A DNA stretch of 64,000 nucleotides from Rebecca billardiae RCC1528 (GCA_965240325.2 OZ251227.1:1426001-1490000), one strand, 5' to 3'; shown: positions 4,113-45,164, counted from the first letter of the stretch. Program-made: numbers and translations. The notes: a model not told the origin generated them from the sequence alone.

Positions 4113-6213
4113 ATGCGGACGTCGAGACGATGCACACGCCGTGCGGTGGGCATCGCCGTCATCTGCGGCGCACTGCGCTCACGCACGCTGAACCTCAGCG
4201 CGCACCCGGATTACGCCGCCTGCGTCGAGAACCCGGCCACGTGCACCACCCTGTACGGACGCGCGAGCGCGGCGCAGACCGCGAGCGGGTGCTGCAGTGG
4301 GCGCGGCGCTCACCCCGCCTGGCCCGTGCCCGCGACGCTGCAGGGACGTGCGGATGGAAGGGCTGACCGGCTCTCTCCCTAGCAATCTGCTCTCGTTCAC
4401 GCGCCTCGCCCAACTGTGCGCGCCATGCCTCCTGCGGCGAAACGCCACCGCGTGCGCGCTCGCATCGCCGCGGGCACGCCCCTGACCGGCCACGCGCGCC
4501 ACTGCGCCCGCGCCCTGCCCGCAGGGATTTGGGGGCGAACGCGATCACTGGCTCGCTTCCGAGCGAGCTTGGCCTCCTGACGGCGTTGACTCTACTGTGC
4601 GCCGCGTCGCGTCCCACACGCGTGCGGCCGCGATGGCCGGCGCGCCCCTCGCGCGTGGCTCGCTCTTGATCAGCCGGTCTGCGCACCGATACCCGCCAGG
4701 CTTCTGGAGTCGAACAGCCTGACGTCGAGCGTGCCCTCCGAAGTGAGTACGCTCACGCAGCTGCGCCAGCTGCGCATGAACGACAACGACCTCGATGGGC
4801 CCCTGCCGACGGAGCTGGCAGGCATGGCCGCGTGCACGGCTCTGTGCGCCGCAGCGCGCAACGCGCGCCGCGCGCACACGCCGCCCGCGCCTGCCCGCGC
4901 GCGGGACGCGTGGGCTCACGGCGCGCGTCTGCCCCGACTGCGTCCCACGCTTGCTCTTGCCGCCGCCGCCGCGCAGGTACCTGCACGCGAACAGCCTGAC
5001 GCGCGCGCTGCCCACCGAGCTGGGCGCGCTGGGCGCGCTGCTGTACGTGCGCTTGTACGAGAACCTTCTCAGCGGCGCGCTACCCACCGAGCTGGGTGGG
5101 CTGGGCGCGCTGCGGGAGCTCGATCTGGAGGGGAACGGGGGCCTGAACGGGACGATCCCGACGACGCTCGGCCAGCTCGGTAGCCTGCAGTACCTGCTGC
5201 TGCACGGCAACGCGCTCAGCGGGATCTTCCCGACCGAGCTCGCGCGCGCGGCCTCCCTGCTCGGCCTGCTGCTCGACGACAACGCGCTCGGCGACGCGCT
5301 GCCCACGGAGCTCGGCCGGCTGGGCGCGCTGACGCAGCTCGGCGCGAGCTCGAACGCGCTGACCGGGCGCGTTCCCACCGAGCTCGGGCTGCTCACCGCG
5401 CTCAGCACGCTCAGCCTGGGCGACAACTCGCTGTCGGGTGCGCTGCCAAGCTCCCTGGGCGGCCTCGGCCAGTTGCGCGTGCTGTGGGCGCCGAGCAACG
5501 AGCTCACGAGCGTGCCCACGGAGGTGGGCGAGATGCTGCGGCTCTCGAGCCTGGACCTTGCGGGCAACCCGCTGAGCGGCACGCTGCCCGTCGCCGCGCT
5601 CGACAGCCTCGTCTCGCTGCAGGACCTGTTCCTGAGCTACACCGTGAGCTGCGACTTTGGCAGCGCGCCGTGCGGCGACAGGCCGCAGTGCGCGGGCGCG
5701 GGCAGCTACCCGACCTGCCCGTCGCCGCCGCCGAGCCCGCCGCTCGCGCCGCCGCCGCCGAGCAGCCCCCCGCGCCCGCCGCCGGAGTCGCCGCCCGCAC
5801 GTCCGCCGCCGCGCTCGCCGCCGCCGGGCAAGCCTCCGAACGCGCCGCCGCCGCCGCCGCCGCTCGACTCGCACGACCTCGACTTCTGGCAGCTCACCGC
5901 CGCGGTCGCGGGCGCGGTGGGCGGCTGCCTGCTGCTGGCGCTCTGCGCGGTGCTGCTGCTGCGCAGGCGCAAGGCGCAGCGCCAGGGTGTGCCCGGCGGC
6001 CTCCCCGCGGTGAGCGCGCCGTCGCTCGGCCGGCGCCACGGCACCGACCAGAGCGTGGTCTCGGACGTCACCTGGCACACGCTCGGCTCCAGGCGGGGGA
6101 CCGCTGAGGCGTTGGCGCACATGACGACGATGCTCGAATATCTGAGCGGCGGCGGCCGGCGGCGAAGTGAGCGCGATGCAGGGCGCACGGCCCCGCGCCG
6201 CGACGCCGTATGA
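4113..6213 (+). CDS. Leucine-rich-repeat receptor-like membrane protein (5 exons: 4113-4252, 4344-4415, 4525-4596, 4700-4843, 4977-6213)
   Basis: Plant-type 24-aa LRRs (LxxNxLSGxLPTELGxLxxL), N-terminal hydrophobic segment, Cys cap, Pro-rich stalk, TM helix (LTAAVAGAVGGCLLLALCAVLLL-RRRK), short tail; GT..AG introns keep the frame. Confidence 0.85.
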
Positions 6214-7628: not shown

Positions 7629-8714
7629 GCCGCGTCGTCTGACCCACCACCAGCGTCATCACGCCGCCCGCGAGAGCAGCAGATCGGCTCACGCGCCAGC
7701 GAAGCGTGATGGCGGCTTATCCGATGGATCACGGATACTTGCACGCGGAATGGTCAGACTTGAACTGATCAAACTGGAGGCCCGCCCGCCGCGCGCCGGC
7801 GCGCCATCAATCGTTATTCGTCACGATTTATTACGCGATATCATATCGAAATATACGACCTAGCCCTAGGTAAGCACGTTAGAGAAATGTAAGTTCTGAT
7901 GCACTAGCCTAGCCAGTTGTAGATGAGATTAGCCTATCCGCGTGTCAGACTGTAGTACGTCAGTCAGTGTCACTACTCACTCTGACTCGGTGCCGCGCGG
8001 CCCGCGGCGGCCCAGGACCAGGTCGGCCCGCAGCACTCGCCCTCGGTGTCCGGTGCCGGCGGCTAGTCCGAGCCGCGCGAGGGCAGCATACTGGCTTACT
8101 GCTAGCGGATGATATATATAGTATTAGCAGACTGCTGCGCAGCCACGTGGTCGGAGCGCTATCACGTATCATCGCAGATGCCGAACAACCTGTAAACCTT
8201 GCCGTGCCCGACGTGCCCGGCCCGCCGTGGCCTGGCCCGGAACGCGAGATCTCATCGAGACAAGCATGGAGCAGCCAGCAGGCGTCTTCCGCCCGTCGAG
8301 TCGGCCGGATGGCGGATCGCGCGTGGGCACAATGGTACTGGGTACGGGGCCGCCCGGCGGTCCGGCGCGGGCGTGGTTACCGTCGTCGGCGGGTCGCCGG
8401 AGGTGTCGGCCGCACGGCCGTACGGACCCCAGAGCGCCTTTCGCGCGCCTCGCTTGAGGGCGGGGGACGTCCGCGCGCGAAACGCGCCTCACCAAAACAG
8501 GCTGTCTGCAGTGAGTGCACATCGCTTTAGTGGGCTTCATCTGGCACTGCGCGCGCGAGAGGGGTGCTGCAGGCGCGCGGAGGGCGACCCGGATGAGGCT
8601 GACGCGTTGGGAGGGGTGGTCACCCAACGCGAGCTCGTCCGGGGCGCACAGGTGAGCGCTGCGCACGCACCGGAGTGCTGCAGCGAACTTTTGCGCCGTC
8701 CCGGCTCCACCGGC

Positions 8715-11700
8715 ATGTCGTCTCGTCAGCAGCCGGCGGCCCTGGGCGAGTCGACTCTGGCAGAGCGATCGCAGATCGCGCAAGACGCCGAGATTGCGGC
8801 TAGGCTACACGAAGAGCTTAACGGCAAGGTGGGGACCGAGCACCACGCCCAGCTGGATTCAATGGCGGCGAACGCGGCAGAGACCGGCCGGTGCGCACCC
8901 GGAAGCATGACTTGTCATGGCGCGAGCGGTGAGGGCAGATTCGGTGCTTGGGCGGCCAGCGGGTGTGACGAGCCACCAGGTACATTCAAGTTCTATGCAA
9001 CCGACTTCCCGCCGCCCGGCTTAGCAGGCGCCGCGGGCGCCGCTCCCAATCATACCCATCCTACCCCTGACTGACCTCGTCGCACCTGCCCACTGTGGCC
9101 CACACATGCGCTCCTGCGCGCGCGCAGGCGCGGCCACGGGCGGCCCGGTCGGCGCGGCGGGTGGCGGGTCTGGCGCGGGTGGCACGCAAGGTGGCTCTCC
9201 CCTCGGCTCGGCCACGGGCGGCGCGGGCGTCGGCAGCTCGTTCAGCGCGCCGACCGGCGGCGTGCCGTCCCTCTTCGGCGGCGCCGGCGCCGCGGGAGCG
9301 AGCACTGCCTCGCCCATCGGCAGCACGTTCGGCGGCGGCGCGGGTGCAGGCGCGGGCGGCGTGGGCAGCCGCGCACCCACGCGCTCGTTCGGCATGCCGG
9401 CGAGCTCGACGCCGTCGCTCATCGGCGGCGCGGCGGGCGGCGGGTCTGGCGCGAGTGGCACGCAAGGTGGCTCTCCCTTCGGCTCGGCCACGCGCGGCGC
9501 GGGCGCGTTCGGCGGCGCGGCGGGCGGCGGGTCTGGCGCGAGTGGCACGCAAGGTTGCTCTCCCTTCGGCGCGGCCACGGGCGGCTCGGGCGCGGCGGGC
9601 GGCAGGTCTGGCGCGAGTGGCACGCAAGGTTGCTCTCCCTTCGGCGCGGCCACGGGCGGCGCGGGCGCGTTCGGCGGCGCGGCGGGCGGCGGGTCTGGCG
9701 CGAGTGGCACGCAAGGTGGCTCTCTCTTCGGCTCGGCCACGGGCGGCGCGGGCGCGTTCGGCGGCGCGGCGGGCGGCGGGTCTGGCGCGAGTGGCACGCA
9801 AGGTGGCTCTCTCTTCCCGCCGAAGCCGCCCGTGGCGAAGCCGAAGGTTCGGCTCCGCCACGGGCGGCTTCGGCGCCGGGTGGGCGGCGGGTCTGGCACG
9901 CAAGGTGGCTCTATCGTCGGCGCGTCAGCTGCAGGTGGCGCATGCAGCGTTGGCATTGCAGCCGCTGGTGCTGCCGGGATCGGCCGCTCCGGCGCACTCA
10001 ACTCGCAGGGCGCTGAGATCCCAGCTTCACCCGAGGCTATGGCGGCACAGCACCCACATGCCACCATGGGCACGGGTGTACCACCCTACCGGCCTACACT
10101 GCTCGAGTGCCCCTCGTTCGAGGCGCTGGCCGGTCAGTTGTTCATCTACCACTCGATCACGATGATGCCCGCGTACGCGCCCAAGTCGTTCGAGGAGCTG
10201 CGCGCGGAAGACTACGCGCTCGGCAAACGCTGCATTGCACCGGGCCCCCCTGCTCCCTGGCCCAGGCCCTGCAGCGTGCATGCGAGCACACAGACACCGC
10301 CGGCACTGTTCGGCGGCAGCGGTGGTTGGGCAGGCAGCTCGCCCAACCCCTCAGCTGAGCCCGACGCCCGGCGCGTCGGCAGGGCCGACGGCGGGGCAAA
10401 TTGCTCAGCCGCACCCGACGCGCACCGGCCAGGTGCCTCTCTCGTCAGCGCGGGTCCGGCGGCGAGCGGACTCAACACGTCCGCGGCACCGGGCAGTTCG
10501 GCTGCGGCGCGTCCCCCGGCGCGCAGCTTTCGACCGGGCACCGCAGCTGGCGGCGGAGCGAGCGCGGAGCGAGGGGGCGCGAGCGCGTCGGCCTGGGCCA
10601 ATGGTGACGGTTTGCTCCTCGGTGAGCAGCTCAGCCGCGCACGCGCGCTGCGGTCATCGGTTGCGCCGATGGGCCCACAATCGCACGTTGCGTTTCCTGA
10701 GAAGCTCTCGCGCATGATTGGCAGTGTGCGGCGCATGCATGCGCGCGGTGGCGAGCGTCAGTGGCCCTCGCTCGACCCACCTGCTGTCGTGCTGCGGCTG
10801 CGCGTGCTGCCTCCTGATGGCGATGGTGATCTCACGCCGCAGCCGAGAGTGCGCATCGAGTTCGAGCAGCTCGCCCTGCTCCGCGCGCGTGAGGCCGAGC
10901 TCGCTGCTCGCGTTCGCGATGAGTGCAGCTCACGCGCGGCATCGGAGGCGCCGCAGCATGCAGACCGGCCTGGCGAGCTGCGCGCGCTGATTGGCGACCG
11001 GCAGCGCGCTCGCCAGGAGCTGGCGCGCGCACTGGATGATCGCCTGGCGACGCTCATCGCCGCACAGATCGAGCAGCGACTCGACGAGGTCTGCGCGAAT
11101 CTGGTTGACGTCCGCCCAGCTCGCGACCTGCTACCTCCCGCCTCCTCGTCGGCACCAGAGCGTATGAGCGCGAGCGACATTCGCGAGGTGGTCGACACCT
11201 TTGACGCGTGGGCGAATGAGCTCGGCCGCGAGCTCGACGAGCTCAAGGTGCAGACTGAGGAGAGCGCGCGGAGAGCGTGGGAGGCGCTCGAAGCGCTCGC
11301 CCGCGCTCTGTGCGAGGAGAGCCGCCGCGTGGAGGTAAGCAGCGACAACACCCTTCTCCGCTTCAGTGCGGCTGGCCTAGTCGGTGCGGCCAGGCAGCGG
11401 TTCTGCACCCTCGCGTCAGCGGCGGCTGCCAATGTCGGCCGGGAGGTGGCGGCCTTGGAGACCGGCTACACAGATCGGATCCTCAGCGCGTGCGGTGGGG
11501 ATCCGCGGGGTCGACCCAGAGCGCAGCTCGGCATCCTGCTCTCAAGCCGCCTCGGCTCCGCAGCGCACCGGCTGTGCGCGCAGCTCGAGGCGGAGGAGGC
11601 GACATTGCGCGACGCGCGGCAGGAGTCGCGCAACCTGCGAGCCGAGCGCGCGGCGCTCCGGCCGCAGCTCGCTGACGCGGAGCAGAGCATGCGTGCGCTG

Positions 11701-13710
11701 TGTGCGCTCGATTACGAGCTCGCCAAGCTGAACCACGCGCACAGGCGGATTGCAGTGGACACCCAGTCCCCTGAGACGGCTGGCGACGCTGTCGCGCGGC
11801 TCGAGACGGAGATGCGAGCCCTCGACATCGAGCGGCGCGCAGCGTACGCCAGCCGTGAGCAGCAGCGAGGTGCGCTCCTGCGCGTGGGCAGCCACTTCCC
11901 CGAGATCCGAGCTCCGAGCAAGTGGCTGGCGGCGGGCTGGCTCGAGGGCAGAAACCCCGTTGCCAAGCTCGAGGAGCTGCTTGTGTCGCTCGACGTGCCG
12001 CAAGCCGCGCCCGGCCGCACCCTCGACATGTACGAGCGCTCCGAGTGGCCCGCAAGCATCTCGCCCTCTCACGGGCGCGTGTTTGTGCGCCGCTTCGGGG
12101 GCGAGGCGTGCGTGCTGAAAAGCGTCGAGCTGGCCGACGCCACTGCACTTCGCCGGCTGCAGCGCTCGTGCCAGCTGCTGCACCGACTGCGCGCGCATCG
12201 GCACGTGCTCAGGCTCAGCGCTGTCTGGCACGCAGACGCGCCGTCGGGGGTGCAGTGCGCATACCTGCACTCGCCGCTGTACGCGGGCGGCTCGCTGCGC
12301 CACTTCCTCGGCGCGCGCGAGCGTGCGGTGCTCTCGGACGTGCTCGACGAGCAGCAGGCGCACGCGTGCCTCCCGCTGGACGACGATCGCGTGCAGCACA
12401 CGCACGTGCGGCTGCTCGCGGAGGCGCTCTCCGCCGTCTCGCACGTGCACGCGCACGGCTTTGTGCACTGCGACCTCAAGCTGGAGAACATTCTCGTCGA
12501 CCTGTCGGCCGGCCCGGCTGGCACTGCCGTGCTCGCTGACTTCGAGCTGTGCCACGCGCACGACGACGACCCGCGCGCGCTCGAGCAGGCGCACACGCTG
12601 CGCACGCGCGCCATCGGCACGGCGCTGTACATGAGCCCCGAGCTCCTGAGTGATCCCCCCGCGCGCTCGTCCGAGGCCAGCGACGTGTTCGCATTCGGCG
12701 TGTGCGTGCTGCTCGCGTGCTGCCCGAGGGCGCGCGCGGCGGAGGGCGGGGTGATCACGCGGCAGCAGCTGGACAAGCTGGCACGCGACGCACAGCCGCG
12801 ATCGCGCGATCTGCGCGAGCTGCTGAACGCGACGATGCTGCGCGCGGAGCCGGCGCAGCGCATCTCGGCGGCGGAGCTCGAGATGCTCAGCTTCTTCACA
12901 ACGGGCCGCGAGGCGATGCACGCTCGGATCGAGACCGACGCGGCGCGCGACACCTGCTGCATCTGCCTCGAGAGCCACCGGCGATCGGCCGGCGCGCAGT
13001 GCTCTGGTGGCGCAGACTTCTTCTGCGCGGATTGCCTGTGCAACCTGGTGATACAGCGCACGACTGTGCCGGCCATGGACGGCGCCATCCAGTGCGTCGG
13101 CGTCGGCTGTGCCGGCCGCGTCGAGGGCCGCGAGGTGCTGCGCGTGCTCAGCTCGGTCGGTGACGACAGGCGGGCGGCGTACGTGCGCAGGCTGCAGGAG
13201 CACTTCGATGCGCTCAGCCGGCGAGAGCAAGAGCTCGAGACGCAGCAGGCGATCGAGCGCGCACGGCGCGAATGGGAGCGGAGCTCGGAGGAGGCGCAGC
13301 GTGACGCCAGCCTGCGCGCGCGCGTGTGTGAGGAGGCGCTCAGCTTGCGCTGCCCGGCGTGCCGCCAGGTCTTCGACGACTTCGATGGATGCGCCGCGCT
13401 GCAGTGCGCACGCCAGCTGTGCCGGGCGCATTTTTGCGCGCTCTGCCTCGAGCAGAGTCGGGACGGAGCAAGGTGCCATACGCACGTGCGGCAATGCGCG
13501 CACAACCCCATGCGCGGCCAGTATCATCTCCCGCGCGAGCAGTGGCCAGACATCAAGCGCAGCACCTTCAAGCGCCAGCTGCGCGCACTCCTCGCCTCGC
13601 TCCCGACGGTGCAGGAGCGTCAGCGCGCTCTCCGCGCAGCGCGTCGCGACCTTTCGGACGCGCGCATCGACGTGGAGGCCGAGCTGCGCCACGTCGTCCG
13701 CCAGGGCTAG
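8715..13710 (+). CDS. Multidomain protein: MIU-like motif, FG repeats, Nup98-type GLEBS motif, coiled coil, Ser/Thr kinase, RING and RBR-type RING2 (exons 8715-8979, 9128-13710)
   Basis: YHSITMMPAYAPKSFEELRAEDY (GLEBS); VLK, HCDLKLEN, DFE, GTALYMSPE, SDVFAFG (kinase); CCICLE..C..FCADC..C..C (RING); CPAC..DGCAALQC..C..HFCALC (RING2); phase-1 GT-AG intron 8980-9127 joins the frames. Confidence 0.85.
9420..9816 (+). repeat. 87-bp (29-aa) tandem repeat encoding Gly-rich FG units
   Basis: GCGAGTGGCACGCAAGG recurs at 9451, 9538, 9613, 9700 and 9787; peptide GGSLFGSATGGAGAFGGAAGGGSGASGTQ. Confidence 0.9.
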
Positions 13711-14796
13711 CAGGTAAGCAGCGGTGAGCGGCAGCGCCGACAGCAATGACTCGCCAACGAGTGAGAGAGAGAGATATGTGGCGTTATAGGGAACCTATAA
13801 CTGAGTGTCTATGAGCGACGCCAAGAATCCGGCTCGCACGGCATTCCTGCGTTGTCCCGCGCGCACCGCCGCGCGCGGGAGTCCTGGTGCGCTGCCAATC
13901 TGGCCCACACTCACAGCGGCGCACCTGCAGGACCGTCGGTTCAGGTTACCGCTCACATCGGATCGATCAGGCTTCGCTCTCGGGGGCGCCATGGGGCTGC
14001 TCGCGACGAAGGCGCCGAGCTGGGCAAGGGAATCGCCTGCATCGAGCACTGCCGGGTGCACTCTCCGCTGCAGGAGGTGCACCGCAGTCGCCGCAGCCCC
14101 TCTGCTCGGTAAGGTCGCTGGCTGTCTGTGTGGCCCGGCTCCCCGCCTGATCGTTCGGCGGCGCGACGACATCATCTACTGTCTTCGCCGCGTCGCCCCT
14201 CATGCAATATGGTCTCTTGCTCTCGCCGCTGTCGCGTCAACCCGCACGCTTCATCGTTTGCCCGCCCGCCCACCCTCGGCCTCTGGCGGATATGGAAGCA
14301 CTGCAGCGTCAGCGAGCCATCAGCCCTAATCGACCTTGCTCAGTGACTGACGACTCGCGGGCGCCCTCTCGACCTCGGGCAGCAGCTCAGCGCCCTCTCG
14401 ACCTTGGGCAGCAGCTCAACCGCCACGCCGCTGCCAGCGCCCGCTGTCGTTCGTTGCTCAAATCCCAACATAGCTAACCTGATCGTTCCATGATTGATCA
14501 TCGTGATGGTCTGTCTACTCCACGACGCCGCGCGCCGCGACCATCCAGCTCCAGAGTCCATTCGTACCCGACGCCTTGTGCGAGCCGGGCATGGCGGAGT
14601 GGCTAGACATATATATATATAGCTGCGCTAGCAGTCGTCGTCATATCTGCGCGCTAGCGCGCCGATCATCATATCGTCGTCATCATATTATTACTACTGC
14701 TCATCATATTGCATGCTGCGCAGATCGACGTCGGATCACTCAGACGACAGCAGCAGCATCATCATCGTCGCATTGTCATCATGATGACTGAGACGA

Positions 14797-27900: not shown

Positions 27901-30900
27901 CTCCGCGCTCAGCGCGCCGCCAAACGGCGGCCGGTTGATCGGCACGCGCACCGAGCCTATCCCAACCGCACCGGCCGGCTGCGGCGCGCCGCCTTCGCCC
28001 TCGCCCTCGCCCTCGCCGGCGCGCGCGGGCGCGGCGCTCACGCGCAGCTCGAAGGCGTACACGCCGCCCGGCGCGAGCACGGCGCGGTGGAAGCCGAGGG
28101 AGGGCGAGGCGTCGCCCGTCGTCGTCACGCGCGCGCGGTCGGCCAGCGCCAGCCCCGCCGGGCCGAGCGCCCCGGCCGCGCCCTCGAGCAGCGCGCGCCA
28201 CGCGCGGCCCACCGACAGCGGCGCGCCCGGCGGCAGCAGCAGCGCGCGCGCCACGCGCTCCAGAGACGGCTGCTCGAGCCGGGTGTGGAGCACCAGCCGC
28301 CCCGGCTCGGCGGGGCTGAGCCACGTCGGGTTGTACTTGGCGCGCGCGAGCGGCTCGAACAGCACCGTCGGCACCGCGTGCGCCACCACGCTCACGCGCA
28401 CGGCCGCGGCGGCGGAGGCGCGGCCTGCCTTGTCGACGCGCACGCTCGCGCGGTACTCAGCCGGGGGCAGCGCGCCCGCCGGGATGCGGAGCACCGGCGC
28501 GGAGGCGTCGACGCCGCCGAGCGTGCCGTTGGCGCCCCCGCCGAGGGGCAGCGGCGCGGGCTCGCCCTCGCGCTCGAGCGCCCAGCTGAAGCTCAGGCCG
28601 GCCGCCCCCGCCTCGCCCGGCTCGTTGGGGTCGGCGCTGGCGGACGCGTCAAGCCACAGCGGCGCGCTCGCGGACGCGACGCGGTCGCCGCCCGCCAGCG
28701 CCGCGCGCACCGGCTGCACGCGCACCGCGACGCGCACGAGCGCGCTCGCGGCCTGCGCGGGCGCGTCCGCCATCGCCGCGCGCACGCGCAGCTCGTACTC
28801 GAAGCCGGCCGAGAGCGCGTGCGGCCCGAGCTGCAGCGAGGAGGAGCGCGCGCCGCCGAGCTCGGGCACGCGCGCGCCCGCGGCCGCGGCAGCGGCGCCG
28901 AGCGCGGCCGCGTCGCCGGCCGCCGCGTCGCCGTCGACGAGCAGCGCGCCCGTCGACGCGTCGCGCAGCGCGGCGAGCGCCCAGGAGAAGCCGACGCGCG
29001 GGCTGTCGCGCGGCCAGCACTCGGCGAGCTCCGCGCGCGCCGCGAGGCGCAGCGGCCGGCCCGCCGCCACCTCCACGCGCGTCGGCCCAAGCAGCCGCAC
29101 GGACGGACGTCCGTCGTGCACGACGCGCACGCGCCAGCTGGCGGGCTCGGAGCTCGCGTTGAGCAGCGGGGAGGTGACGACGAGCGAGAAGGCGTACTCG
29201 CCGCTCGTGCCCAGCCCCTCGAGCCTCGGCGCGGCCGCGCGCGCACCCAGCGCACCCAGCGCACCGCGCACCGCGCCCACCCCCTCGGCGCTCGACGCGT
29301 TCGAGTCCGCATCCCAGCGGTACGCGAGGCCAGGCGCGCCGCCGCCGCGCGAGCCCGTGCCGTCGAGCACGAGCGCGGCGCCGGGGCACGCGGAGACGTG
29401 CGCCGGCGCGGAGATGGCGGCGACGGGCGGCGCGCACGCGCCGTCCTCGCACGGCGCCGCCGGGTCGATCAGCACGCTCGCCGCCGCCGAGCCGAGCGCC
29501 TCCGCGCACGCGGGCGCGCACGCGGCGGGCCAGAGCGCGCCCGCGCGCGCGCCAACCGTCGCGCCCGCGCGCAGCGCGGTGGCCGCGGTGAGCTGCGCGA
29601 GCAGCGTCGAGTCGTCGCGCCAGCGGCAGAGCGGCTCGGCGGCGGCGCCGCCCCGCAGCAGCGCGAGCGTCTCGTCGTCGAGCACCGCGTCGCAGCGGCC
29701 GAGGTCGCTGCCCATGCCCGCGCGGTCGGTCGGCTGCGCGTCGAAGCGCAGCAGCAGCCCGGTGAGCCGCGCGTCGAAGCCAGCCCACTCGAGCGAGGGC
29801 GCGTGCAGCGGCGGCGACGGCGGCGGCGGCGGGGGCGCGGGCGGCGGGGGCGCGGGCGGCGGGTGCGCCGGCGGCGTGGGCGGCGCGCTCTCGCACGAGC
29901 CGTCGTCCACCTCCGCGCCCGAGTCGAAGTTTGGCGCCGCCGCGTGTGCGCAGCCGGCGCGCAGCAGTACGGGGAGCGCCTCGACGCCAAAGCCGAGGAC
30001 GACGGAGAGCTCCGGCAGCGAGAGCGCGCGCAGCGCGCCCACCACGTCCACGCGCTCGCCCGTCGCGCTCAGCTCGCGCGCCCAGAAGACGACGAGGATC
30101 GACGCGGCGCTCACCGAGTGCACGCGCACGTGCGCGCTCGGCACGCCCGCCACCGCGGCCGCGCGCGCCGCCGAGCCGGCGCGCTCCTCGTCTGTCGCGA
30201 GCTCCGACACGTCGCCCGAGCCGAGCACGCTGAAGTACACCTCGGGGATCGGCGCGGGGGGCAGCGGCGGCGGGTGCGGCGGGCGCGGCGGCGAGGGCGG
30301 CGGCGAGGGCGGCGGCGGCGAGGCGGGCGGCGCGCTCGGGGGCGGGCTCGAGGGCGGCGGCGGCGAGGGCGGCAGGCTCGGCGGAGGAGGTGGCGGCGCC
30401 GAGGGCGGCGGCAGCGGCGGCGGCGACGGCGGCGGCGCGGGCGGCGGCGCGGACGGCGGCGGCAGCGGCGGCGGCGCGGGCGGCGGGCGTGGCGGCGGCG
30501 GAGGCAGTGGCGGTGGCGCCGGGCTCGGCGGCGGGCGCGGCTTCCAATCGGGCGGAGGGCGTGGCGGGCTCGGCGGTGGCGGCGCGCGAGGCGACGGCGA
30601 GGGCGGCGGCGAGGGCGGAGGCGAAGGCGCCGGGCTGGGCGGCGGCGGCGGCGGCGCGCTCGGTGGCGGCGGTGGCGGCGACGACGGCGGCGGCGCGGGC
30701 GGCGGCGGCGACGGCGGCGGCAGTGGCGGAGGCGGCGGCAGAGGCGGCGCCGGTGGCGGGTGCGGAGGCGAGGGTGGCGGCGGGCTGGGCGGCGGCGAGG
30801 GCGGAGGTGACGGCGGCGAGGGCGGCGGCGGCGAGGGCGGCGGCGAGGGCGGCGGGCTCGGCGGCGGCGGGCTTGGCGGCGGCGCCGGCGGCGGGCTGGG

Positions 30901-32568
30901 CGGCGAGGGCGGCGGCGGGCTCGGCGGCGGCGAGGGCGGCGGGCTCGGTGGCGAGGGCGGTGGCGCCGGCGGCGGCGGCGACGGTGGCGGGCTCGGCGGT
31001 GGCGAGGGCGGCGGGCTCGGCGGAGGCGACGGTGGGGGGGGTGGCGAGGGCGGCGGGCGTGGCGGGAGCGGCGGCGGGCGCGGTGGCGCCGGCGGCGGCG
31101 AGCTCGGCGGTGGCGAGGGGGGCGGGGCCGGCGGCGAGGGCGGCGGCAGCGAGGGCGGCGGCGAGGGCGGCGGTGAGGGCGGCGGCGGGCTCGGCGGCGG
31201 CATCGGACGCGGCGAGGGCGGCGGCGGCGGCGCGGGCGGCGCCGGCGGCGGCGCCGGTGGCATCGGCGGCGGCGATGAGGGCGGCGGGCTCGGCGGCGGG
31301 CTCGGCGGCGATGGTGGCGGCGGTGACGGCGGCGGCGACGGCGGCGGCGACGGCGGCGGCGGGCTCGGCGGCGGCGCGGGCGGCGGGCTCGGCGGTGCGG
31401 GCGGCGGGCTCGGCGGCGGCGGCGACGGCGGCGGCGAAGGCGGCGGCGGGCTGGGCGGCGGGGCGGGCGGCGGCCTCGGCGGCAGCGGCGGCGGCGGCGG
31501 CGCCGGTGGCGGTGAGGGCGGCGGCGGGCTCGGCGGCGGCATCGGACGCGGCGAGGGCGGCGGCGGCGGCGCGGGCGGCGCTGGCGGCGGCGCCGGCGGC
31601 GTCGGCGGCGGCGATGAGGGCGGCGGGCTCGGCGGCGGGCTCGGCGGCGATGGTGGCGGCGGTGACGGCGGCGGCGACGGCGGCGGCGACGGCGGCGGCG
31701 GGCTCGGCGGCGGCGCGGGCGGCGGGCTCGGCGGTGCGGGCGGCGGGCTTGGCGGCGGCGGCGACGGCGGCGGCGACGGCGGCGGCGGGCTGGGCGGCGG
31801 GGCGGGCGGCGGCCTCGGCGGCAGCGGCGGCGGCGGCGGCGATGGCGGCGGTGAGGGCGGCGCGGGCGGCATCGGCGGCGCATCTGGAGGCGGCGGCGGC
31901 GGCGGCGACGGCGGCGGCGGCGGTGGCATCGCCGGCGGCGGCGGCGGCGGCGGGCTCGGTGGCGGCGGCGGCGGCGGGCTCGAAGGCGGGCTCGGCGGCG
32001 GCGGCGGCGGCGCATGGGGCGGCGGGCTCGGCGGCGGGCTCGGCGGCGGCGGGGGCGGCAGTGGCGGCGCGGGCGGAGGCGAGGATGGCGGGCTCGGCGG
32101 CGGGCTGGGCGGCGCCGGTGGCAAGGGTGGGCTGGGCGGCGGTGGGCTGGGCGGTGGGCTTGGTGGGGATGGCGGCGGACTTGGCGGTGGGCTCGGCGGC
32201 GAAGGCGGCGAGGGCGGGCTCGGCGGTGGTGGGCTCGGCGGCGGGCTGGGCGGCGGTGGCGGCGGGCTCGGCGGCGGGCTGGGCGGCGGGCTTGGCGGCG
32301 GCGATGGTGGTGGCGGTGGCGGCGGGCTGGGCGGCGGCGGGCTGGGCGGCGGGCTCGGCGGCGGGCTCGGCGGAGGCGGAGACGGTGGCGGGCTGGGCGG
32401 TGGCGGGCTGGGTGGCGGGCTCGGCGGCGACGATGGCGGCGGCGAAGGTGGCGGGCTCGGCGGCGGGCTCGGCGGCGGCGGCGGTGGGCTAGGCGGCGGC
32501 GGGCTGGGCGGCGGGCTGGGCGGTGGCGAGGGCGGCGGCGAGGGCGGTGGGCTGGGCGGCGGGCTGGG

Positions 32569-32601
<33 letters not shown>

Positions 32602-35600
32602 CGGCGGCGGGCTCGGCGGCGGCGAGGGAGGCGGCGAGGGCGGCGGGCTCGGCGGCGGCGCGGGCGGCGGCGGCGAGGGCGGCGGCGAGGGCGGCGGAGG
32701 CGGCGGTGGGCTGGGCGGCGGCGGGCTGGGCGGCGGGCTGGGCGGCGGGCTGGGCGGCGGCGGAGACGGTGGCGGGCTGGGCGGTGGCGGGCTGGGTGGC
32801 GGGCTCGGCGGCGACGATGGCGGCGGCGAAGGTGGCGGGCTGGGCGGCGGGCTGGGCGGCGGGCTGGGCGGCGGCGGGCTCGGCGGCGGGCTGGGCGGTG
32901 GCGCCGGCGGCGGCGAAGGTGGTGGGCTGGGCGGCGGGCTTGGCGGCGGTGGCGGCGGGCTGGGCGGCGGCGGGCTCGGCGGCGGGCTGGGCGGTGGCGA
33001 CGGCGGCGGCGACGGCGGTGGGCTTGGCGGCGGGCTGGGCGGCGGCGGCGGTGGACTCGGTGGCGGCGGGCTCGGCGGCGGGCTCGGTGGCGGCGACGGA
33101 GGCGAGGGTGGCGGCGGCTTCGGCGGCGGCGACGGCGGTGGCGCTGGCGGCGGCGGCGGCGGTGGCGACGGCGGCGGCGGCGGAGGCATGCGCGGCGGCG
33201 GCGGCGGCGGCGGGCTCGGCGGCGGCGGCGGCGGCGGTCTGGCAGGCGGTGCGGGCGGCGGCGCGCTCGGCACCGGCGGCGGGCTCGGTGACGGCGGTGG
33301 CGCGCTCGGCGGCGCGCTCGGCGGCGGCGACGGCGAGCACAGCCACTCGAGCGACCACAGACTCGAGTCCTTGTGCAGCCCAGGTCGCGCGCGCGGGCCC
33401 GGCACTGTCGCGCAGCAGTAGCAGCGCCCGTCCTCGTAGAAGGCGATCGACTGCGACGCGCAGCTGCCCACGAGCAGCTCGGCGCACGCCTGCGCGCTCG
33501 GCGCGATCGCGTCCGGCGGAGGCGCGTTGCCCTCGTCGATGCACGTGCCGCCAGGGACCGGCAGGAAAGCGACCGCGGAGATGTTGGTGTTGCCGCCGCA
33601 CGGGGGCGGGGGCGACGGGGGCGGCGACGGCGGCGGCGGCGGGCTGGGCGGCGGCGGGCTGGGCGGCGGGTGGGGCGGCGGCGCGGACGGCGGCGGCGAC
33701 GGGTAGGGCGGCGGCGGCGGGCGCGGTGGCGGCGGCGGTGGCGGCCGCGGTGGTGGCGGCGGCGGCGAGAGCGGTGGCGACAGTGGCGGCGGGGCTGGCG
33801 GCGGCGGCGCGGGCGGCGGCGGCAACGGCGGGGGGCTGGGCGGCGGCGACGGAGATGGGGACGGCACTGGCGGCGGCGGGCTCGGCAGCGGTGGGCTCGG
33901 CGGCGACGGCGGGCTCGGCGGCGGCGAGCCCGGCGGCGGGCTTAGCGGCGGTGCCGGCGGCGGCGGCACTGGCGGCGGGCGCGGCGGCTGTGGCGACGGC
34001 GCTGGTGGCGGCGGGCTCGGCATCGGCGGACTCGGCGGCGATGGCGGCGACGGCGGTGGCGGGCTCGGAGGTGGTGATGGCGGCGGCAGTGGCGAAGGTG
34101 GCACCGTCGGCGGCGGAGGGCTCGGCCGCGGCGGGCTCGGCGGCGATGGCGGCGGCAGGCTCGGTGGCGGCGGCGGCGGAGGTCGAGGTGGCGCGCTTGG
34201 CGGAGGCGCACTGGGCGGCGGGCTCGGAGGGGGCGGGCTCGGCGGTGATGGCGGCGGGCTCGGTGGTGGCGGTGGCGGAGATGACGGGGGCGTTGGGCTC
34301 GGCGGAGGCGACGGCCAAGCCGGTGGCTTTGGCGGCGGCGGGCTTGGCTGCGGCGGGCTGGGCGGCGACGGCGGCGGCGGGCTTGGTGGCGGCGCGGGCG
34401 GTGGCGACGGCGGCGACGGTGGCGAGGGTGAAGGCGGTGAGCTCGGTGATGAGGGCGGCGTCGGCTGGCCCGTCTGCACTGGGCTCGGCGGGGGCGGCGG
34501 CGCGCTCGGCGGCTCCGACGGCGGCGGTGGGCTGGGCAGCGGCGGGCTCGGCGGTGGCGGCGGCGCGCTTGGCGGCTCCGACGGCGGCGGTGGGCTGGGC
34601 AGCGGCGGGCTCGGCGGTGGCGGCGGCGCGCTTGGCGGCTCCGACGGCGGCGGTGGGCTGGGCAGCGGCGGGCTCGGCGGTGGCGGCGGCGCGCTTGGCG
34701 GCTCCGACGGCGGCGGTGGGCTGGGCAGCGGCGGGCTCGGCGGTGGCGGCGGCGCGCCCGGGGGCTGAGACGGCGGCGGTGGCGGCGGTGGACTGCTCGG
34801 CGGTGCGGCCGGCGGCGCGGGCGGTGGCGGGCACACCCACTCCGACTCCCACAGCGATGCAGACGGGCGCGGGTAGAGCGTGAACGGGTCCGGGCAGCAG
34901 TAGCACTCGCCCGTGTCCGCCCAGAAGCTGAACACCGAGCACGCGCTGTACAGCGCGGCAGCGCACTCGTCCTCGTCACGCGCACCCACCACGTCAGGCA
35001 CACTCGACAGGCGGCGCGGCCGGGGAGGGCCCGCCTTGTCGTCCGGCACGCACGAGTAGCCCGTCGGAGGACCGCCCGAGTACGCAGTCGCCTGAACCGC
35101 GCCATTGCCGTTGCAAGGCGGAGGTGGCGCGGGTGGCAACGACGGCGGTGGCGGAGGCGGCGGCGGGCTTGGCGGCGGTGGGCTTGGCGGCGGCATGGGC
35201 GGTGGTGACGGCGGCGGAGGCGGCGGCGGACTTGGCGGCGGTGGGCTTGGCGGCGGCATGGGCGGTGGTGACGGCGGCGGAGGTGGTGGCGGGCTTGGCG
35301 GCGGTGGGCTTGGCGGCGGCATGGGCGGAGGCGACGGCGGCGGAGGCGGCGGCGGGCTTGGCGGCGGTGGGCTTGGCGGCGGCATGGGCGGAGGCGACGG
35401 CGGCGGAGGCGGCGGCGGGCTTGGCGGCGGTGGGCTTGGCGGCGGCATGGGCGGTGGTGACGGCGGCGGAGGCGGCGGCGGGCTTGGCGGCGGTGGGCTT
35501 GGCGGCGGCTCGGGCGGTGGTGACGGCGGCGGAGGTGGTGGCGGGCTTGGCGGCGGTGGGCTTGGCGGCGGCATGGGCGGAGGCGACGGCGGCGGAGGCG

Positions 35601-36864
35601 GCGGCGGGTTTGGCGGCGGTGGGCTTGGCGGCGGCATGGGCGGTGGTGACGGCGGCGGAGGCGGCGGCGGGCTTGGCGGCGGTGGGCTTGGCGGCGGCTC
35701 GGGCGGTGGTGACGGCGGCGGAGGTGGTGGCGGGCTTGGCGGCGGTGGGCTTGGCGGCGGCATGGGCGGTGGCGACGGCGGTGGCGGCGGCGGCGGGCTT
35801 GGCGGCGGTGGGCTTGGCGGCGGCATGGGCGGTGGTGACGGCGGCGGAGGTGGTGGCGGGCTTGGCGGCGGTGGGCTTGGCGGCGGCATGGGCGGAGGCG
35901 ACGGCGGCGGAGGCGGCGGCGGGCTTGGCGGCGGTGGGCTTGGCGGCGGCATGGGCGGTGGTGACGGCGGCGGAGGTGGTGGCGGGCTTGGCGGCGGTGG
36001 GCTTGGCGGCGGCATGGGCGGAGGCGACGGCGGCGGAGGCGGCGGCGGGCTTGGCGGCGGTGGGCTTGGCGGCGGCATGGGCGGTGGCGACGGCGGCGGA
36101 GGCGGCGGCGGGCTTGGCGGCGGTGGGCTTGGCGGCGGCATGGGCGGTGGCGACGGCGGCGGAGGCGGCGGCGGGCTTGGCGGCGGTGGGCTTGGCGGCG
36201 GCATGGGCGGTGGTGACGGCGGCGGAGGCGGCGGCGGGCTTGGCGGCGGTGGGCTTGGCGGCGGCATGGGCGGTGGTGACGGCGGCGGAGGTGGTGGCGG
36301 GCTTGGCGGCGGTGGGCTTGGCGGCGGCATGGGCGGTGGTGACGGCGGCGGAGGTGGTGGCGGGCTTGGCGGCGGTGGGCTTGGCGGCGGCGACGGCGGC
36401 GGTGGCGGAGGTGGCGGTGGCGGCGGGCTCGGCGGCGGCGACGGTGGCGATGGCGGGTCCTGCGGCGGTGGCGACGGTGGCGGCAGCGGCGAGCACACCC
36501 ACTCCGACTCCCACAGCGATGCAGACGGGCGCGGGTAGAGCGTGAACGGGTCCGGGCAGCAGTAGCACTCGCCCGTGTCCGCCCAGAAGCTGAACACCGA
36601 GCACGCGCTGTACAGCGCGGCAGCGCACTCGTCCTCGTCACGCGCACCCACCACGTCAGGCACACTCGACAGGCGGCGCGGCCGGGGAGGCCCCGCCTTG
36701 TCGTCCGGCACGCACGAGTAGCCCGTCGGAGGACCGCCCGAGTACGCAGTCGCCTGAACCGCGCCATTGCCGTTGCAAGGCGGAGGTGGCGCGGGTGGCA
36801 ACGACGGCGGTGGTGGGCTCGGTGGCGGGGAGGGCGGTGGTGGCGATGGCGGCGGCGAGGGCGG

Positions 36865-36897
<33 letters not shown>

Positions 36898-37155
36898 CGG
36901 TGGCGGCGACGGCGGCGGTGATGGCGGCGGCGGCGGAGGCGGGCTTGGCGGCGGTGGCGATGGCGGCGGCGATGGCGGCGGTGGTGGTGGCGGAGACGGC
37001 GGTGGCGGGCTCGGTGGTGGCGACGGCGGAGGCGATGGCGGCGGCGGCGGAGGCGGGCTCGGTGGCGGCGGGCTGGGTGGCGGCGAGGGCGGCGGTGGCG
37101 GGGGCGGAGACGGCGGTGGCGGGCTCGGTGGTGGGGATGGCGGAGGTGATGGCGG

Positions 37156-37188
<33 letters not shown>

Positions 37189-39402
37189 CGGCGGCGGCGA
37201 GGGCGGCGGTGGCGGTGGCGGAGACGGCGGCGGCGGGCTCGGCGGTGGCGACGGCGGCGGTGATGGCGGCGGCGGCGGAGGTGGACTCGGCGGCGGTGGC
37301 GATGGCGGCGGCGACGGCGGCGGCGATGGCGGCGGTGGCGGTGGCGGAGACGGCGGTGGCGGACTGGGTGGTGGGGATGGCGGAGGCGATGGCGGCGGCG
37401 GAGGTGGCGGGCTCGGCGGTGGTGGCGACGGCGGCGGCGATGGCGGCGGTGGCGGCGGCGGAGACGGCGGTGGTGGCGACGGCGGTGGCGATGGCGGCGG
37501 TGGCGGAGGTGGACTCGGCGGCGGTGGCGACGGCGACGGCGATGGCGGCGGTGGCGGTGGCGGAGACGGTGGCGGTGGCGACGGCGGCGGCGATGGCGGC
37601 GGTGGCGGTGGCGGGCTCGGCGGTGGTGGCGACGGCGGCGGCGATGGCGGCGGTGGCGGAGGTGGACTCGGCGGCGGCGGCGACGGCGGAGGCGATGGCG
37701 GCGGTGGCGGTGGCGGGCTCGGCGGTGGTGGCGACGGCGGCGGCGATGGCGGCGGTGGCGGAGGTGGACTGGGCGGCGGTGGCGACGGCGGCGGCAATGG
37801 TGGCGGTGGCGGCGGCGGAGACGGCGGTGGTGGCGACGGCGGCGGCGATGGTGGCGGTGGCGGCGGCGGAGACGGCGGTGGTGGCGACGGCGGCGGCGAT
37901 GGCGGCGGTGGCGGCGGCGGAGACGGCGGTGGTGGCGACGGCGGTGGCGATGGCGGCGGTGGCGGTGGCCGGCTCGGCGGCGGTGGCGACGGCGGCGGCG
38001 ATGGCGGCGGTGGCGGTGGCGGAGACGGCGGTGGTGGCGACGGCGGCGGCGATGGCGGCGGTGGCGGTGGCGGGCTCGGCGGTGGTGGCGACGGCGGCGG
38101 CGATGGCGGCGGTGGCGGAGGTGGACTCGGCGGCGGCGGCGACGGCGGAGGCGATGGCGGCGGTGGCGGTGGCGGGCTCGGCGGTGGTGGCGACGGCGGC
38201 GGCGATGGCGGCGGTGGCGGAGGTGGACTGGGCGGCGGTGGCGACGGCGGCGGCAATGGTGGCGGTGGCGGCGGCGGAGACGGCGGTGGTGGCGACGGCG
38301 GCGGCGATGGTGGCGGTGGCGGCGGCGGAGACGGCGGTGGTGGCGACGGCGGCGGCGATGGCGGCGGTGGCGGTGGCGGAGACGGCGGTGGTGGCGACGG
38401 CGGCGGCGATGGCGGCGGTGGCGGTGGCGGGCTCGGCGGTGGTGGCGACGGCGGCGGCGATGGCGGCGGTGGCGGAGGTGGACTCGGCGGCGGCGGCGAC
38501 GGCGGAGGCGATGGCGGCGGTGGCGGTGGCGGAGACGGCGGTGGTGGCGACGGCGGCGGCGATGGCGGCGGTGGCGGTGGCGGGCTCGGCGGTGGTGGCG
38601 ACGGCGGCGGCGATGGCGGCGGTCGCGGAGGTGGACTCGGCGGCGGCGGCGACGGCGGAGGCGATGGCGGCGGTGGCGGTGGCGGGCTCGGCGGTGGTGG
38701 CGACGGCGGCGGCGATGGCGGCGGTGGCGGTGGCGGGCTCGGCGGTGGTGGCGACGGCGGCGGCGATGGTGGCGGTGGCGGCGGCGGAGATGGCGGTGGT
38801 GGCGACGGCGGCGGCGATGGTGGCGGTGGCGGCGGCGGAGACGGAGGTGGCGGGCTCGGTGGTGGGGATGGCGGAGGCGATGGCGGAGGCGGAGGTGGCG
38901 GGCTCGGCGGAGGTGGGCTCGGCGGCGGGCTCGGTGGCGGTGGCGGAGGTGGCGGTGGCGGCGGGCTCGGCGGCGGCGACGGTGGCGATGGCGGGTCCTG
39001 CGGCGGTGGCGACGGTGGCGGCAGCGGCGAGCACACCCACTCCGACTCCCACAACGATGCAGACGGGCGCGGGTAGAGCGTGAACGGGTCCGGGCAGCAG
39101 TAGCACTCGCCCGTGTCCGCCCAGAAGCTGAACACCGAGCACGCGCTGTACAGCGCGGCAGCGCACTCGTCCTCGTCACGCGCACCCACCACGTCAGGCA
39201 CACTCGACAGGCGGCGCGGCCGGGGAGGCCCCGCCTTGTCGTCCGGCACACACGAGTAGCCCGTCGGAGGACCGCCCGAGTACGCAGTCGCCTGAACCGC
39301 GCCATTGCCGTTGCAAGGCGGAGGTGGCGCGGGTGGCAACGACGGCGGTGGTGGGCTCGGTGGCGGGGAGGGCGGTGGTGGCGATGGCGGCGGCGAGGGC
39401 GG

Positions 39403-39435
<33 letters not shown>

Positions 39436-39693
39436 CGGTGGCGGCGACGGCGGCGGTGATGGCGGCGGCGGCGGAGGCGGGCTTGGCGGCGGTGGCGATG
39501 GCGGCGGCGATGGCGGCGGTGGTGGTGGCGGAGACGGCGGTGGCGGGCTCGGTGGTGGCGACGGCGGAGGCGATGGCGGCGGCGGCGGAGGCGGGCTCGG
39601 TGGCGGCGGGCTGGGTGGCGGCGAGGGCGGCGGTGGCGGAGGCGGAGACGGCGGTGGCGGGCTCGGTGGTGGGGATGGCGGAGGTGATGGCGG

Positions 39694-39726
<33 letters not shown>

Positions 39727-40161
39727 CGGCGGCGGCGAGGGCGGCGGTGGCGGTGGCGGAGACGGCGGCGGCGGGCTCGGCGGTGGCGACGGCGGCGGTG
39801 ATGGCGGCGGCGGCGGAGGTGGACTCGGCGGCGGTGGCGATGGCGGCGGCGACGGCGGCGGCGATGGCGGCGGTGGCGGTGGCGGAGACGGCGGTGGCGG
39901 ACTGGGTGGTGGGGATGGCGGAGGCGATGGCGGCGGCGGAGGTGGCGGGCTCGGCGGTGGTGGCGACGGCGGCGGCGATGGCGGCGGTGGCGGTGGCGGA
40001 GACGGCGGCGGCGGACTGGGTGGTGGGGATGGCGGAGGCGATGGCGGCGGCGGCGGAGGCGGGCTCGGCGGCGGTGGGCTGGGTGGCGGCGAGGGCGGCG
40101 GCGGCGGAGGCGGAGACGGCGGTGGCGGGCTCGGCGGTGGCGATGGCGGCGGTGATGGCGG

Positions 40162-40194
<33 letters not shown>

Positions 40195-42510: not shown

Positions 42511-42542
<32 letters not shown>

Positions 42543-43080
42543 AGCTGGGCGGTGGTGGCGATGGCGGTGGCGATGGTGGCGGTGGTGGCGGCGGACTTGG
42601 CGGTGGCGGGCTGGGCGGCGGGCTCGGAGGCGGCGACGGTGGTGGCGGTGGCGGCGAGCTCGGCGGCGGCGGCGACGGAGGCGGCGATGGCTGTGGGGGC
42701 GGCGGCGATGACGGCGGCGGTGGGCTCGGTGGCGGGCTCGGAGGCGGCGACGGCGGCGGTGGCGGCGGCGAGCTCGGTGGCGGCGGCGATGGCGGTGGGC
42801 TTGGTGGTGGTGGCGGCGGCGGACTTGGCGGTGGCGGGCTGGGCGGCGGGCTCGGAGGCGGCGACGGTGGTGGCGGTGGCGGCGAGCTCGGCGGCGGCGG
42901 CGACGGAGGCGGCGATGGCTGTGGGGGCGGCGGCGATGACGGCGGCGGTGGGCTCGGTGGCGGGCTCGGAGGCGGTGATGGCGGGGGCGGCGGCGGCGAG
43001 CTGGGGGGCGGCGGCGATGGCGGGGGCGATGGAGGCGGTGGCGGCGGCGGACTTGGCGGTGGCGGGCTGGGCGGCGGGCT

Positions 43081-43112
<32 letters not shown>

Positions 43113-44448
43113 AGCTGGGCGGTGGTGGCGATGGCGGTGGCGATGGTGGCGGTGGTGGCGGCGGACTTGGCGGTGGCGGGCTGGGCGGCGGGCTCGGAGG
43201 CGGCGACGGTGGTGGCGGTGGCGGCGAGCTCGGCGGCGGCGGCGACGGAGGCGGCGATGGCTGTGGGGGCGGCGGCGATGACGGCGGCGGTGGGCTCGGT
43301 GGCGGGCTCGGAGGCGGCGACGGCGGCGGTGGCGGCGGCGAGCTCGGTGGCGGCGGCGATGGCGGTGGGCTTGGTGGTGGTGGCGGCGGCGGACTTGGCG
43401 GTGGCGGGCTGGGCGGCGGGCTCGGAGGCGGCGACGGTGGTGGCGGTGGCGGCGAGCTCGGCGGCGGCGGCGACGGAGGCGGCGATGGCTGTGGGGGCGG
43501 CGGCGATGACGGCGGCGGTGGGCTCGGTGGCGGGCTCGGAGGCGGTGATGGCGGCGGTGGCGGCGGCGAGCTCGGTGGCGGCGGCGATGGCGGTGGGCTC
43601 GGTGGTGGTGGCGGCGGCGGACGTGGCGGTGGCGGGCTGGGCGGCGGGCTCGGAGGTGGCGACGGTGGTGGCGGTGGCGGCGAGCTCGGCGGCGGCGGCG
43701 ACGGAGGCGGCGATGGCTGTGGGGGCGGCGGCGATGACGGCGGCGGTGGGCTCGGCGGCGGGCTCGGAGGCGGCGACGGCGGGGGCGGCGGCGGCGAGCT
43801 GGGGGGCGGCGGCGATGGCGGGGGCGATGGAGGCGGTGGCGGCGGCGGACTTGGCGGTGGCGGGCTGGGCGGCGGGCTCGGAGGCGGCGACGGTGGTGGC
43901 GGTGGCGGCGAGCTCGGCGGCGGCGGCGACGGAGGCGGCGATGGCTGTGGGGGCGGCGGCGATGATGGCGGCGGTGGGCTCGGTGGCGGGCTCGGAGGCG
44001 GCGACGGCGGCGGTGGCGGCGGCGAGCTCGGTGGCGGCGGCGACGGAGGCGGCGATGGCTGTGGGGGCGGCGGCGATGACGGCGGCGGTGGGCTCGGTGG
44101 CGGGCTCGGAGGCGGTGATGGCGGCGGTGGCGGCGGCGAGCTCGGTGGCGGCGGCGATGGCGGTGGGCTCGGTGGTGGTGGCGGCGGCGGACTTGGCGGT
44201 GGCGGGCTGGGCGGCGGGCTCGGATGCGGCGACGGTGGTGGCGGTGGCGGCGAGCTCGGCGGCGGCGGCGACGGAGGCGGCGATGGCTGTGGGGGCGGCG
44301 GCGATGACGGCGGCGGTGGGCTCGGTGGCGGGCTCGGAGGCGGTGATGGCGGGGGCGGCGGCGGCGAGCTGGGGGGCGGCGGCGATGGCGGGGGCGATGG
44401 AGGCGGTGGCGGCGGCGGACTTGGCGGTGGCGGGCTGGGCGGCGGGCT

Positions 44449-44480
<32 letters not shown>

Positions 44481-44790: not shown

Positions 44791-44822
<32 letters not shown>

Positions 44823-45132: not shown

Positions 45133-45164
<32 letters not shown>

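Follow-up and report, generated by a model that had tools for sequence, protein, structure and literature searches.

One open frame in Rebecca billardiae joins a Nup98-type FG/GLEBS head to a protein kinase and an RBR-derived ubiquitin ligase module

The window analysed here is a stretch of 64,000 nucleotides from Rebecca billardiae RCC1528 (GCA_965240325.2 OZ251227.1:1426001-1490000), which is eukaryotic and very GC-rich (63-88% GC). At positions 8715-13710 lies a putative gene whose protein combines a nucleoporin-type head, a protein kinase and a module related to the RING-between-RING (RBR) ubiquitin ligases. On the + strand, a single open frame of 1534 codons (9106-13710) contains all of these domains, and residues are numbered in this frame. 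An initial annotation of the window had listed the same domains in one frame, and Pfam, profile, model and fold matches place them at essentially the coordinates it gave. The features of the locus are as follows.

8715-8928, + strand: probable first coding exon, 71 codons long with one base over, from the ATG at 8715, splice signals and a codon-position bias at about 8715-8800
8929-9127, + strand: probable intron, predicted from a pyrimidine-rich 3' part and the terminal CAG
9128-9816, + strand: uncharged FG (Phe-Gly) array, rich in Gly, Ala, Ser and Thr, with 10 FG (SPFG, SLFG, AFGG), from composition and repeats
9818-9875, + strand: near-perfect palindrome inside the FG array (28-nt arms, 96% complementary, 2-nt gap)
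10066-10230 (aa 321-375), + strand: GLEBS of the Nup98 type that binds Rae1/Gle2, from Pfam and PDB
10231-10600, + strand: low-complexity linker, rich in Ala, Gly, Ser and Pro, with one more FG, from composition
10843-11907, + strand: helix-rich region ahead of the kinase, ending in the family motif HFPEI (11893-11907), from composition
12100-12882, + strand: protein kinase domain (Pfam Pkinase, aa 999-1259, E 8.8e-20)
Landmarks of this kinase, + strand, from alignment: Lys1005 (in ACVLK), HCDLKLEN (12466-12489), DFE (12532-12549) and SPE
12955-13110, + strand: RBR-type RING1, from alignment and a profile match to the RING1 of parkin and ARIH1
13111-13350, + strand: helical, Cys-free linker where the in-between-RING (IBR) domain would be, from alignment and a predicted model
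13351-13497, + strand: RING2 (Rcat) with Cys1429 at the catalytic position (13390-13392), then a CHxHVxxC zinc knuckle, from alignment, profile and fold
13498-13710, + strand: conserved helical tail followed by the stop codon, from alignments and modelled helices (217-273)

In terms of the head, the GLEBS is recognised by Pfam Nup98_GLEBS (PF21240) with 29.2 bits on an isolated 100-aa piece (E 9.5e-7, cut-off 27) and with 24.7 bits on the whole protein. The sole PDB matches of this piece, at E up to 10, are the Nup98 GLEBS peptides 7vpg, 4owr, 7byf and 3mmy, all solved with Rae1. This agrees with the initial annotation, which had placed a GLEBS at the same position. A homologue search with the GLEBS region in a set of 5.8 billion proteins returned nothing at E<=10. 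No second FG array follows the GLEBS, and Pfam found no peptidase S59/Nucleoporin2 domain, whether the complete protein or aa 401-985 was scanned. Because the second FG array and the autoproteolytic domain are absent, the head is a Nup98-type fragment, and the protein is not a Nup98 orthologue.

The FG array occupies aa 8-235, where 10 of the 12 Phe residues precede Gly and 4 of the 228 residues are charged. Shuffled versions of this segment have 4.2 FG on average, with 7 of 5000 shuffles reaching 10; the initial annotation had seen FG repeats here as well. Pfam Nucleoporin_FG gave no match, even at E up to 10. Part of the array (9422-9816) is an 87-nt tandem repeat with 4.7 copies and 90% matches. 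The array is FG-nucleoporin-like by composition but short, and it is the weakest element of the protein. The palindrome copies one FG repeat unit in inverted orientation, and in frame it encodes a basic stretch that resembles a nuclear localisation signal, PPKPPVAKPKVRLRHGRLRRR. Either a real insertion that forms a hairpin or an artefact of assembly could account for it.

As for the C-terminal part, the ligase module was compared in an alignment of 68 sequences. In RING1, the alignment has six invariant Cys, one near-invariant Cys and one near-invariant His. The protein here keeps 7 of the 8 zinc ligands, with Asp in place of the His. In RING2, C156, C159, C169, C174, C179, C187 and H198 are invariant, and C184, H200 and C204 are near-invariant (module numbering). 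All of these columns are kept, as is Cys1429. The spacing of RING2 is CPxC-x9-C-x4-C-x4-C-x4-C-x2-C, the same as in parkin RING2. The profile built on the 68 sequences matches RING1 and RING2 of parkin and ARIH1 separately (E 2e-8), with the catalytic Cys in register, which places the catalytic position where the initial annotation had put it.

Between the two zinc domains there is no IBR in either the alignment or the AlphaFold model of the module. Instead, about 70 residues without Cys or His ligands form a linker, modelled as helices at module residues 81-151. The model has a predicted local distance difference test (pLDDT) score of 92.8, shows the helices between the two zinc domains, and has only RBR ligases as top PDB fold matches (RNF216, HHARI, parkin, HOIL-1 and HOIP). 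RING2 and the tail are nearest to the DEAH-helicase RBR proteins P0003 and P0009, which do have an IBR. Since alignment, profile, model and fold are all of RBR type without IBR ligands, we consider the module to be RBR-derived, with the IBR swapped for a helical linker. "RBR-like", the wording of the initial annotation, is thus the right term.

The kinase matches Pfam Pkinase, as had been annotated; in the PDB it finds weak matches of several kinds (RIPK1, PINK1 and PDK1). We aligned it with the kinases situated upstream of the same ligase module, 25 in all. The positions conserved in this alignment are present here: the catalytic Lys, HxD, Lys, Asn, the Asp of DFx, the activation-loop Thr and xPE. 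The glycine-rich loop (GxGxxG) is missing, as in most members of the family, and the column of the helix-C Glu holds Ser. From these residues, an active kinase is plausible but uncertain.

Ahead of the kinase, aa ~580-930 are rich in helix by composition. The initial annotation had a coiled coil here; the helical content stands, and the coiled-coil nature is matched by generic look-alikes only, with scores below 0.8 in a protein-atlas search. The motif HFPE[LI] just before the kinase recurs among relatives.

In an exhaustive search, aa 1261-1534 matched 2056 clusters at E<=1e-3, with 502 at E<=1e-10. Among the longer proteins that bear the module, 22 of 47 have a Pkinase domain directly upstream; other domains on such proteins are leucine-rich repeat (LRR), ankyrin, WD40, Upf1-like helicase, ZZ and C1. 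Judged by sequence, the order helical region, kinase, RING1, linker and RING2 (the chassis) defines a large, widespread and undescribed protist family with variable N-terminal heads. The protein here fits this family in its HFPE[LI] motif, its loop-less kinase and its ligase module with conserved tail. The chassis relatives P0016 and P0040 carry no head. No GLEBS was found in any retrieved relative, and the FG plus GLEBS head was observed in the protein described here alone.

Matches in the AlphaFold DB are uncharacterised proteins with automatic names, several of them fused to a kinase. From the accession prefixes, we would guess that several are marine-protist transcriptome proteins and that the kinase-ligase fusion is transcribed elsewhere. 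The RING2 profile also matched three contigs of giant-virus metagenome-assembled genomes. Two of these AT-rich contigs (L002 7623-8435 and L003 7716-8612) encode proteins of 270-298 aa with RING1, a short linker, RING2 and a tail, which indicates that viral versions of the ligase module exist. These proteins end in a hydrophobic tail that looks membrane-spanning. A further database protein, P0085 (445 aa), has the module followed by C-terminal GLFG-type and poly-Q repeats, the third case that ties the module to FG-type low-complexity sequence.

A parallel to the locus is P0018, a protein of 1437 aa encoded by a single open reading frame (ORF) on a metagenomic scaffold. Its alignment with the protein here spans 760 aa (E 1e-37), beginning in the helical region and reaching the tail; the helical region aligns with P0018 starting at aa 812. 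The N-terminus of P0018 matches Pfam Nucleoporin_FG with 62.9 bits, and the C-terminus has a weak UBA domain. The middle domain has no PDB or Pfam match by sequence and was identified by fold comparison only: its model (pLDDT 76.9) matches the Ran-binding domains of Nup358, RanBP1 and RanBP3, with TM-scores by target of 0.7-0.77 and E of about 1e-6. A language-model search also indicated a Ran-binding domain.

This Ran-binding domain shares 48-77% identity with stand-alone FG-repeat proteins of about 290 aa. Besides the FG repeats, their genes (L005 8001-8861, and 8001-8879 in both L006 and L007) encode a domain of Ran-binding type, missed by Pfam, and they have the look of divergent nucleoporins of the Nup50 type from small marine eukaryotes. 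Because the identity to these genes reaches 77%, the head of P0018 was copied from a small Nup50-like nucleoporin.

In a family tree built on kinase and module, P0018 falls in a clade with 100/100 support, and its sister P0016 is complete and without FG head. The protein here lies outside this clade, on a long unresolved branch that is the second longest in the tree. Since the two proteins fall in separate clades, nucleoporin heads were most likely gained on two or more independent occasions.

Turning to the gene model, frame length alone is no evidence in this window, because long open frames arise by chance in GC-rich DNA. They are frequent at ~70% GC, and one antisense frame of 734 aa has no domain. 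An antisense gene across the locus was considered and rejected, as the antisense open frames carry no domains. The evidence for the frame 9106-13710 comes from the domain matches in one frame, the codon periodicity, and the lack of an internal GC dip of intergenic type. GC at the codon positions (about 0.5 at position 2 and 0.8-0.95 at position 3) fits the frame at 10000-10225 and 10600-13700. The minimum GC across 9100-13700 is 0.58, with flanks that fall to 0.40-0.47 at 7800-7950 and 13740.

A spliced first exon, proposed by the initial annotation, is probable from sequence signals. Two donors lie in phase 1, GTGAGG (8929) and GTACAT (8980), and each joins the acceptor CAG at 9127 in frame with the start at 8715; the exon could therefore end at 8979 rather than 8928. 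The pyrimidine fraction is 0.60-0.67 at 9000-9120, where GC is below that of the exons. This exon adds about 71 residues, including the helix QDAEIAARLHEE, and the peptide has no PDB or Pfam match. The helix had been likened to an MIU ubiquitin-binding motif, a putative resemblance that amounts to a short-motif match of 12 residues.

The reading we favour, with modest confidence, is one nuclear gene in which a Nup98-type head (FG array and GLEBS) is fused to the protist chassis of helical region, Ser/Thr kinase and RBR-derived ligase, giving a protein of ~1,600 aa. The gene probably has two exons, 8715-8928 (or to 8979) and 9128-13710. We infer a single transcript from the continuity of the frame, the composition and the parallel case of P0018.

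Several points weigh against this. A search for RNA runs covering 8700-13800 returned none. The linker 10231-10600, of ~375 nt, has no coding periodicity, and a base-composition estimate gives about 1 chance in 8 that it would be open at 72-80% GC. The FG array is short (10 FG), has no Pfam match and holds the odd palindrome. The databases contain no close orthologue, with a best identity of 32-40%, which limits any case for conservation of the exact fusion. Lastly, with the glycine loop and helix-C Glu missing from the kinase, and Asp in place of the near-invariant His in RING1, kinase or ligase might be impaired.

Some of these observations would also suit two transcription units or a merged model, with a truncated Nup98 paralogue ending at ~10.3 kb, a separate chassis gene starting at ~10.6 kb, and between them a GC-rich spacer that simply has no stops. 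Chance frames such as the antisense one of 734 aa, the linker without periodicity, the lack of an RNA run and the headless chassis of P0016 and P0040 all speak for it. However, no AT-richer intergenic stretch separates the two parts as it does at both gene ends. The linker shows no GC dip and no pyrimidine tract, and nothing in it is intron- or spacer-like; its composition is ordinary for a disordered region, and the remaining frames are stopped at 10356-10358 and 10605-10607. By estimate, the same frame with no stop would occur by chance in ~4% of cases. P0018, furthermore, carries an FG-nucleoporin head and the chassis in a single ORF. We thus regard two units as a minority possibility.

A young chimera or pseudogene, made by segmental shuffling, is quite unlikely. 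Its product would go unused, or the chassis would work with an inert head. With its recent 87-nt tandem repeats and the palindrome, the FG array looks like an unstable region rearranged not long ago, and the small number of FG motifs, the His-to-Asp change in RING1, the missing helix-C Glu and the second longest branch of the tree point the same way. Against decay, no stop or frameshift interrupts 4.6 kb, the kinase and ligase parts show a strong third-position GC bias, the RING2 ligands, catalytic Cys and kinase catalytic residues are all retained, and the GLEBS core is well preserved.

Bub1 also pairs a GLEBS with a C-terminal kinase, and the core SFEELRA resembles the Bub1-type motif. Rae1 and Bub3 are homologous WD40 proteins (PMC2172680). 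A Bub1-like spindle-checkpoint kinase that acts at kinetochores and binds Bub3 instead of Rae1 is nevertheless very improbable and was rejected: Pfam finds no Mad3_BUB1_I/TPR domain, the GLEBS piece matched only Nup98 peptides in PDB and neither Bub1 nor Mad3, the GLEBS comes after an FG array in the manner of Nup98, and the kinase groups with the kinase-ligase family, with Bub1 absent among the best 60 PDB matches.

As for sequencing data, one sample (n=1, three runs) matched 12000-13700 when runs of any kind were allowed. It gave twelve low-depth contigs of unclear kind with no joints, which are uninformative on splicing. The only run holding DNA of the locus has contigs of 151 nt at low depth. 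Just downstream of the gene, a contig of run X1 over 13786-14260 shows 8 substitutions and 5 small deletions, with a depth of 16 vs 3-8 in the gene body; it may represent a diverged allele, another strain or a repeated element.

In the surroundings, the adjoining upstream gene is an ordinary tRNA methyltransferase (Methyltransf_4). Two genes upstream, an open frame at 4795-6213 (+ strand) has LRR_8, LRR_14 and a weak ErbB1-type transmembrane-juxtamembrane match, which suggests a receptor-like protein. Further along the window, 30000-46000 has 80-88% GC and a strong, sustained GC skew (0.31-0.46), under a minus-strand ORF of 8375 codons (23422-48549).

Returning to the single gene, its most likely product is a kinase and thioester-type ubiquitin ligase tethered to Rae1 or the pore, for which the domains suggest a mechanism. 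The GLEBS of Nup98 binds Rae1, RING2 domains of RBR ligases form a ubiquitin thioester, PINK1 gates parkin, and in RanBP2 an FG nucleoporin is itself a ligase. By analogy, the GLEBS here would bind Rae1/Gle2, a WD40 protein, and the FG array would enter the FG phase or bind transport receptors. Together they could bring the enzyme to the nuclear pore or to exporting messenger ribonucleoproteins (mRNPs). RING1 would then recruit a ubiquitin-charged E2, and ubiquitin would be handed to RING2, forming a thioester with Cys1429, and from there onto a substrate. The adjacent kinase might mark substrates or gate the ligase, in the fashion of PINK1 and parkin.

The initial annotation had proposed docking at Rae1 or the pore, with a role as mRNA-export regulator or antiviral decoy. 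Such roles may fit the domain content; its domain calls and its view that the architecture is new both stand. The literature gave no description of FG/GLEBS, kinase and RBR-type ligase in one protein, and a scheme that assigns RBR proteins to 14 subfamilies (PMC2904391) nowhere mentions a kinase. The widespread kinase-ligase chassis and the second nucleoporin head, in P0018, go beyond what had been annotated.

A wider role can also be considered, although we hold it rather unlikely: the chassis may be an intracellular immune effector, with the heads as sensors or integrated decoys. Under such an arrangement, the FG/GLEBS head here and the FG/Ran-binding head of P0018 would act as bait that mimics nuclear-transport proteins attacked by viruses, and a viral effector that seized it would trigger phosphorylation and ubiquitylation. 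The nucleoporin heads on two branches, the LRR, ankyrin and WD40 heads and the module in giant-virus genomes are consistent with this. Head swapping, with recruitment of nucleoporin parts in two lineages, is reminiscent of innate immunity and its sensor-effector or decoy logic.

If expressed, the protein would be the first example in which a kinase and a thioester-forming ubiquitin ligase are coupled directly to a nucleoporin module that binds Rae1. It would open to testing, in a non-model eukaryote, the question of how the pore or exporting mRNPs come to be phosphorylated and ubiquitylated. The locus also exposes a large uncharacterised family, in which an RBR-derived ligase without IBR is usually fused to a loop-less kinase and the heads are swapped.

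Several known systems can be compared with this protein. In Nup98, Nup116 and Nup145N, an uncharged FG array is likewise followed by a GLEBS core, I[ST]xMPxYxxKSxEELRxEDY, and this is the sole type with matching solved peptides. The protein here, in contrast, has only 10 FG and no second array, peptidase S59 or Nup96, and a kinase and a ligase follow instead. Bub1 has a GLEBS-type WD40-binding motif ahead of a kinase; it lacks the FG array and the ligase, whereas the protein here lacks TPR/Mad3_BUB1_I and has another type of kinase. Nup358/RanBP2 is a precedent for a protein-modifying ligase within an FG nucleoporin, and with its FG, Ran-binding and ligase parts it comes particularly near to P0018. 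Unlike the protein here, it is a SUMO E3 without RING, RBR or kinase; our protein has a GLEBS and no Ran-binding domain.

Among the RBR ligases (parkin, HHARI/ARIH1, RNF216, HOIL-1 and the Helicase/"Plant I" subfamily), the CPxxxC ending of RING1 and the spacing of RING2 are shared. The differences are the Cys-free helical linker of ~70 aa without IBR, and the fusion of the module to a kinase. In PINK1 and parkin, too, a Ser/Thr kinase cooperates with a thioester ligase of RBR type, and the weak PDB matches of the kinase include PINK1. They are, however, two proteins vs one chain here; the likeness is one of logic and not of orthology, and phosphorylation of ubiquitin is not indicated for this protein. 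Finally, the chassis is shared with members of the undescribed protist family, for example P0001, P0002, P0016 and P0018, whose UniProt entries are named only "RING-type" or "Protein kinase domain-containing protein". Their heads differ from the one here, being absent, ankyrin, LRR or FG with Ran-binding, but they have in common with it the HFPE[LI] motif, the loop-less kinase and the ligase module with its tail.

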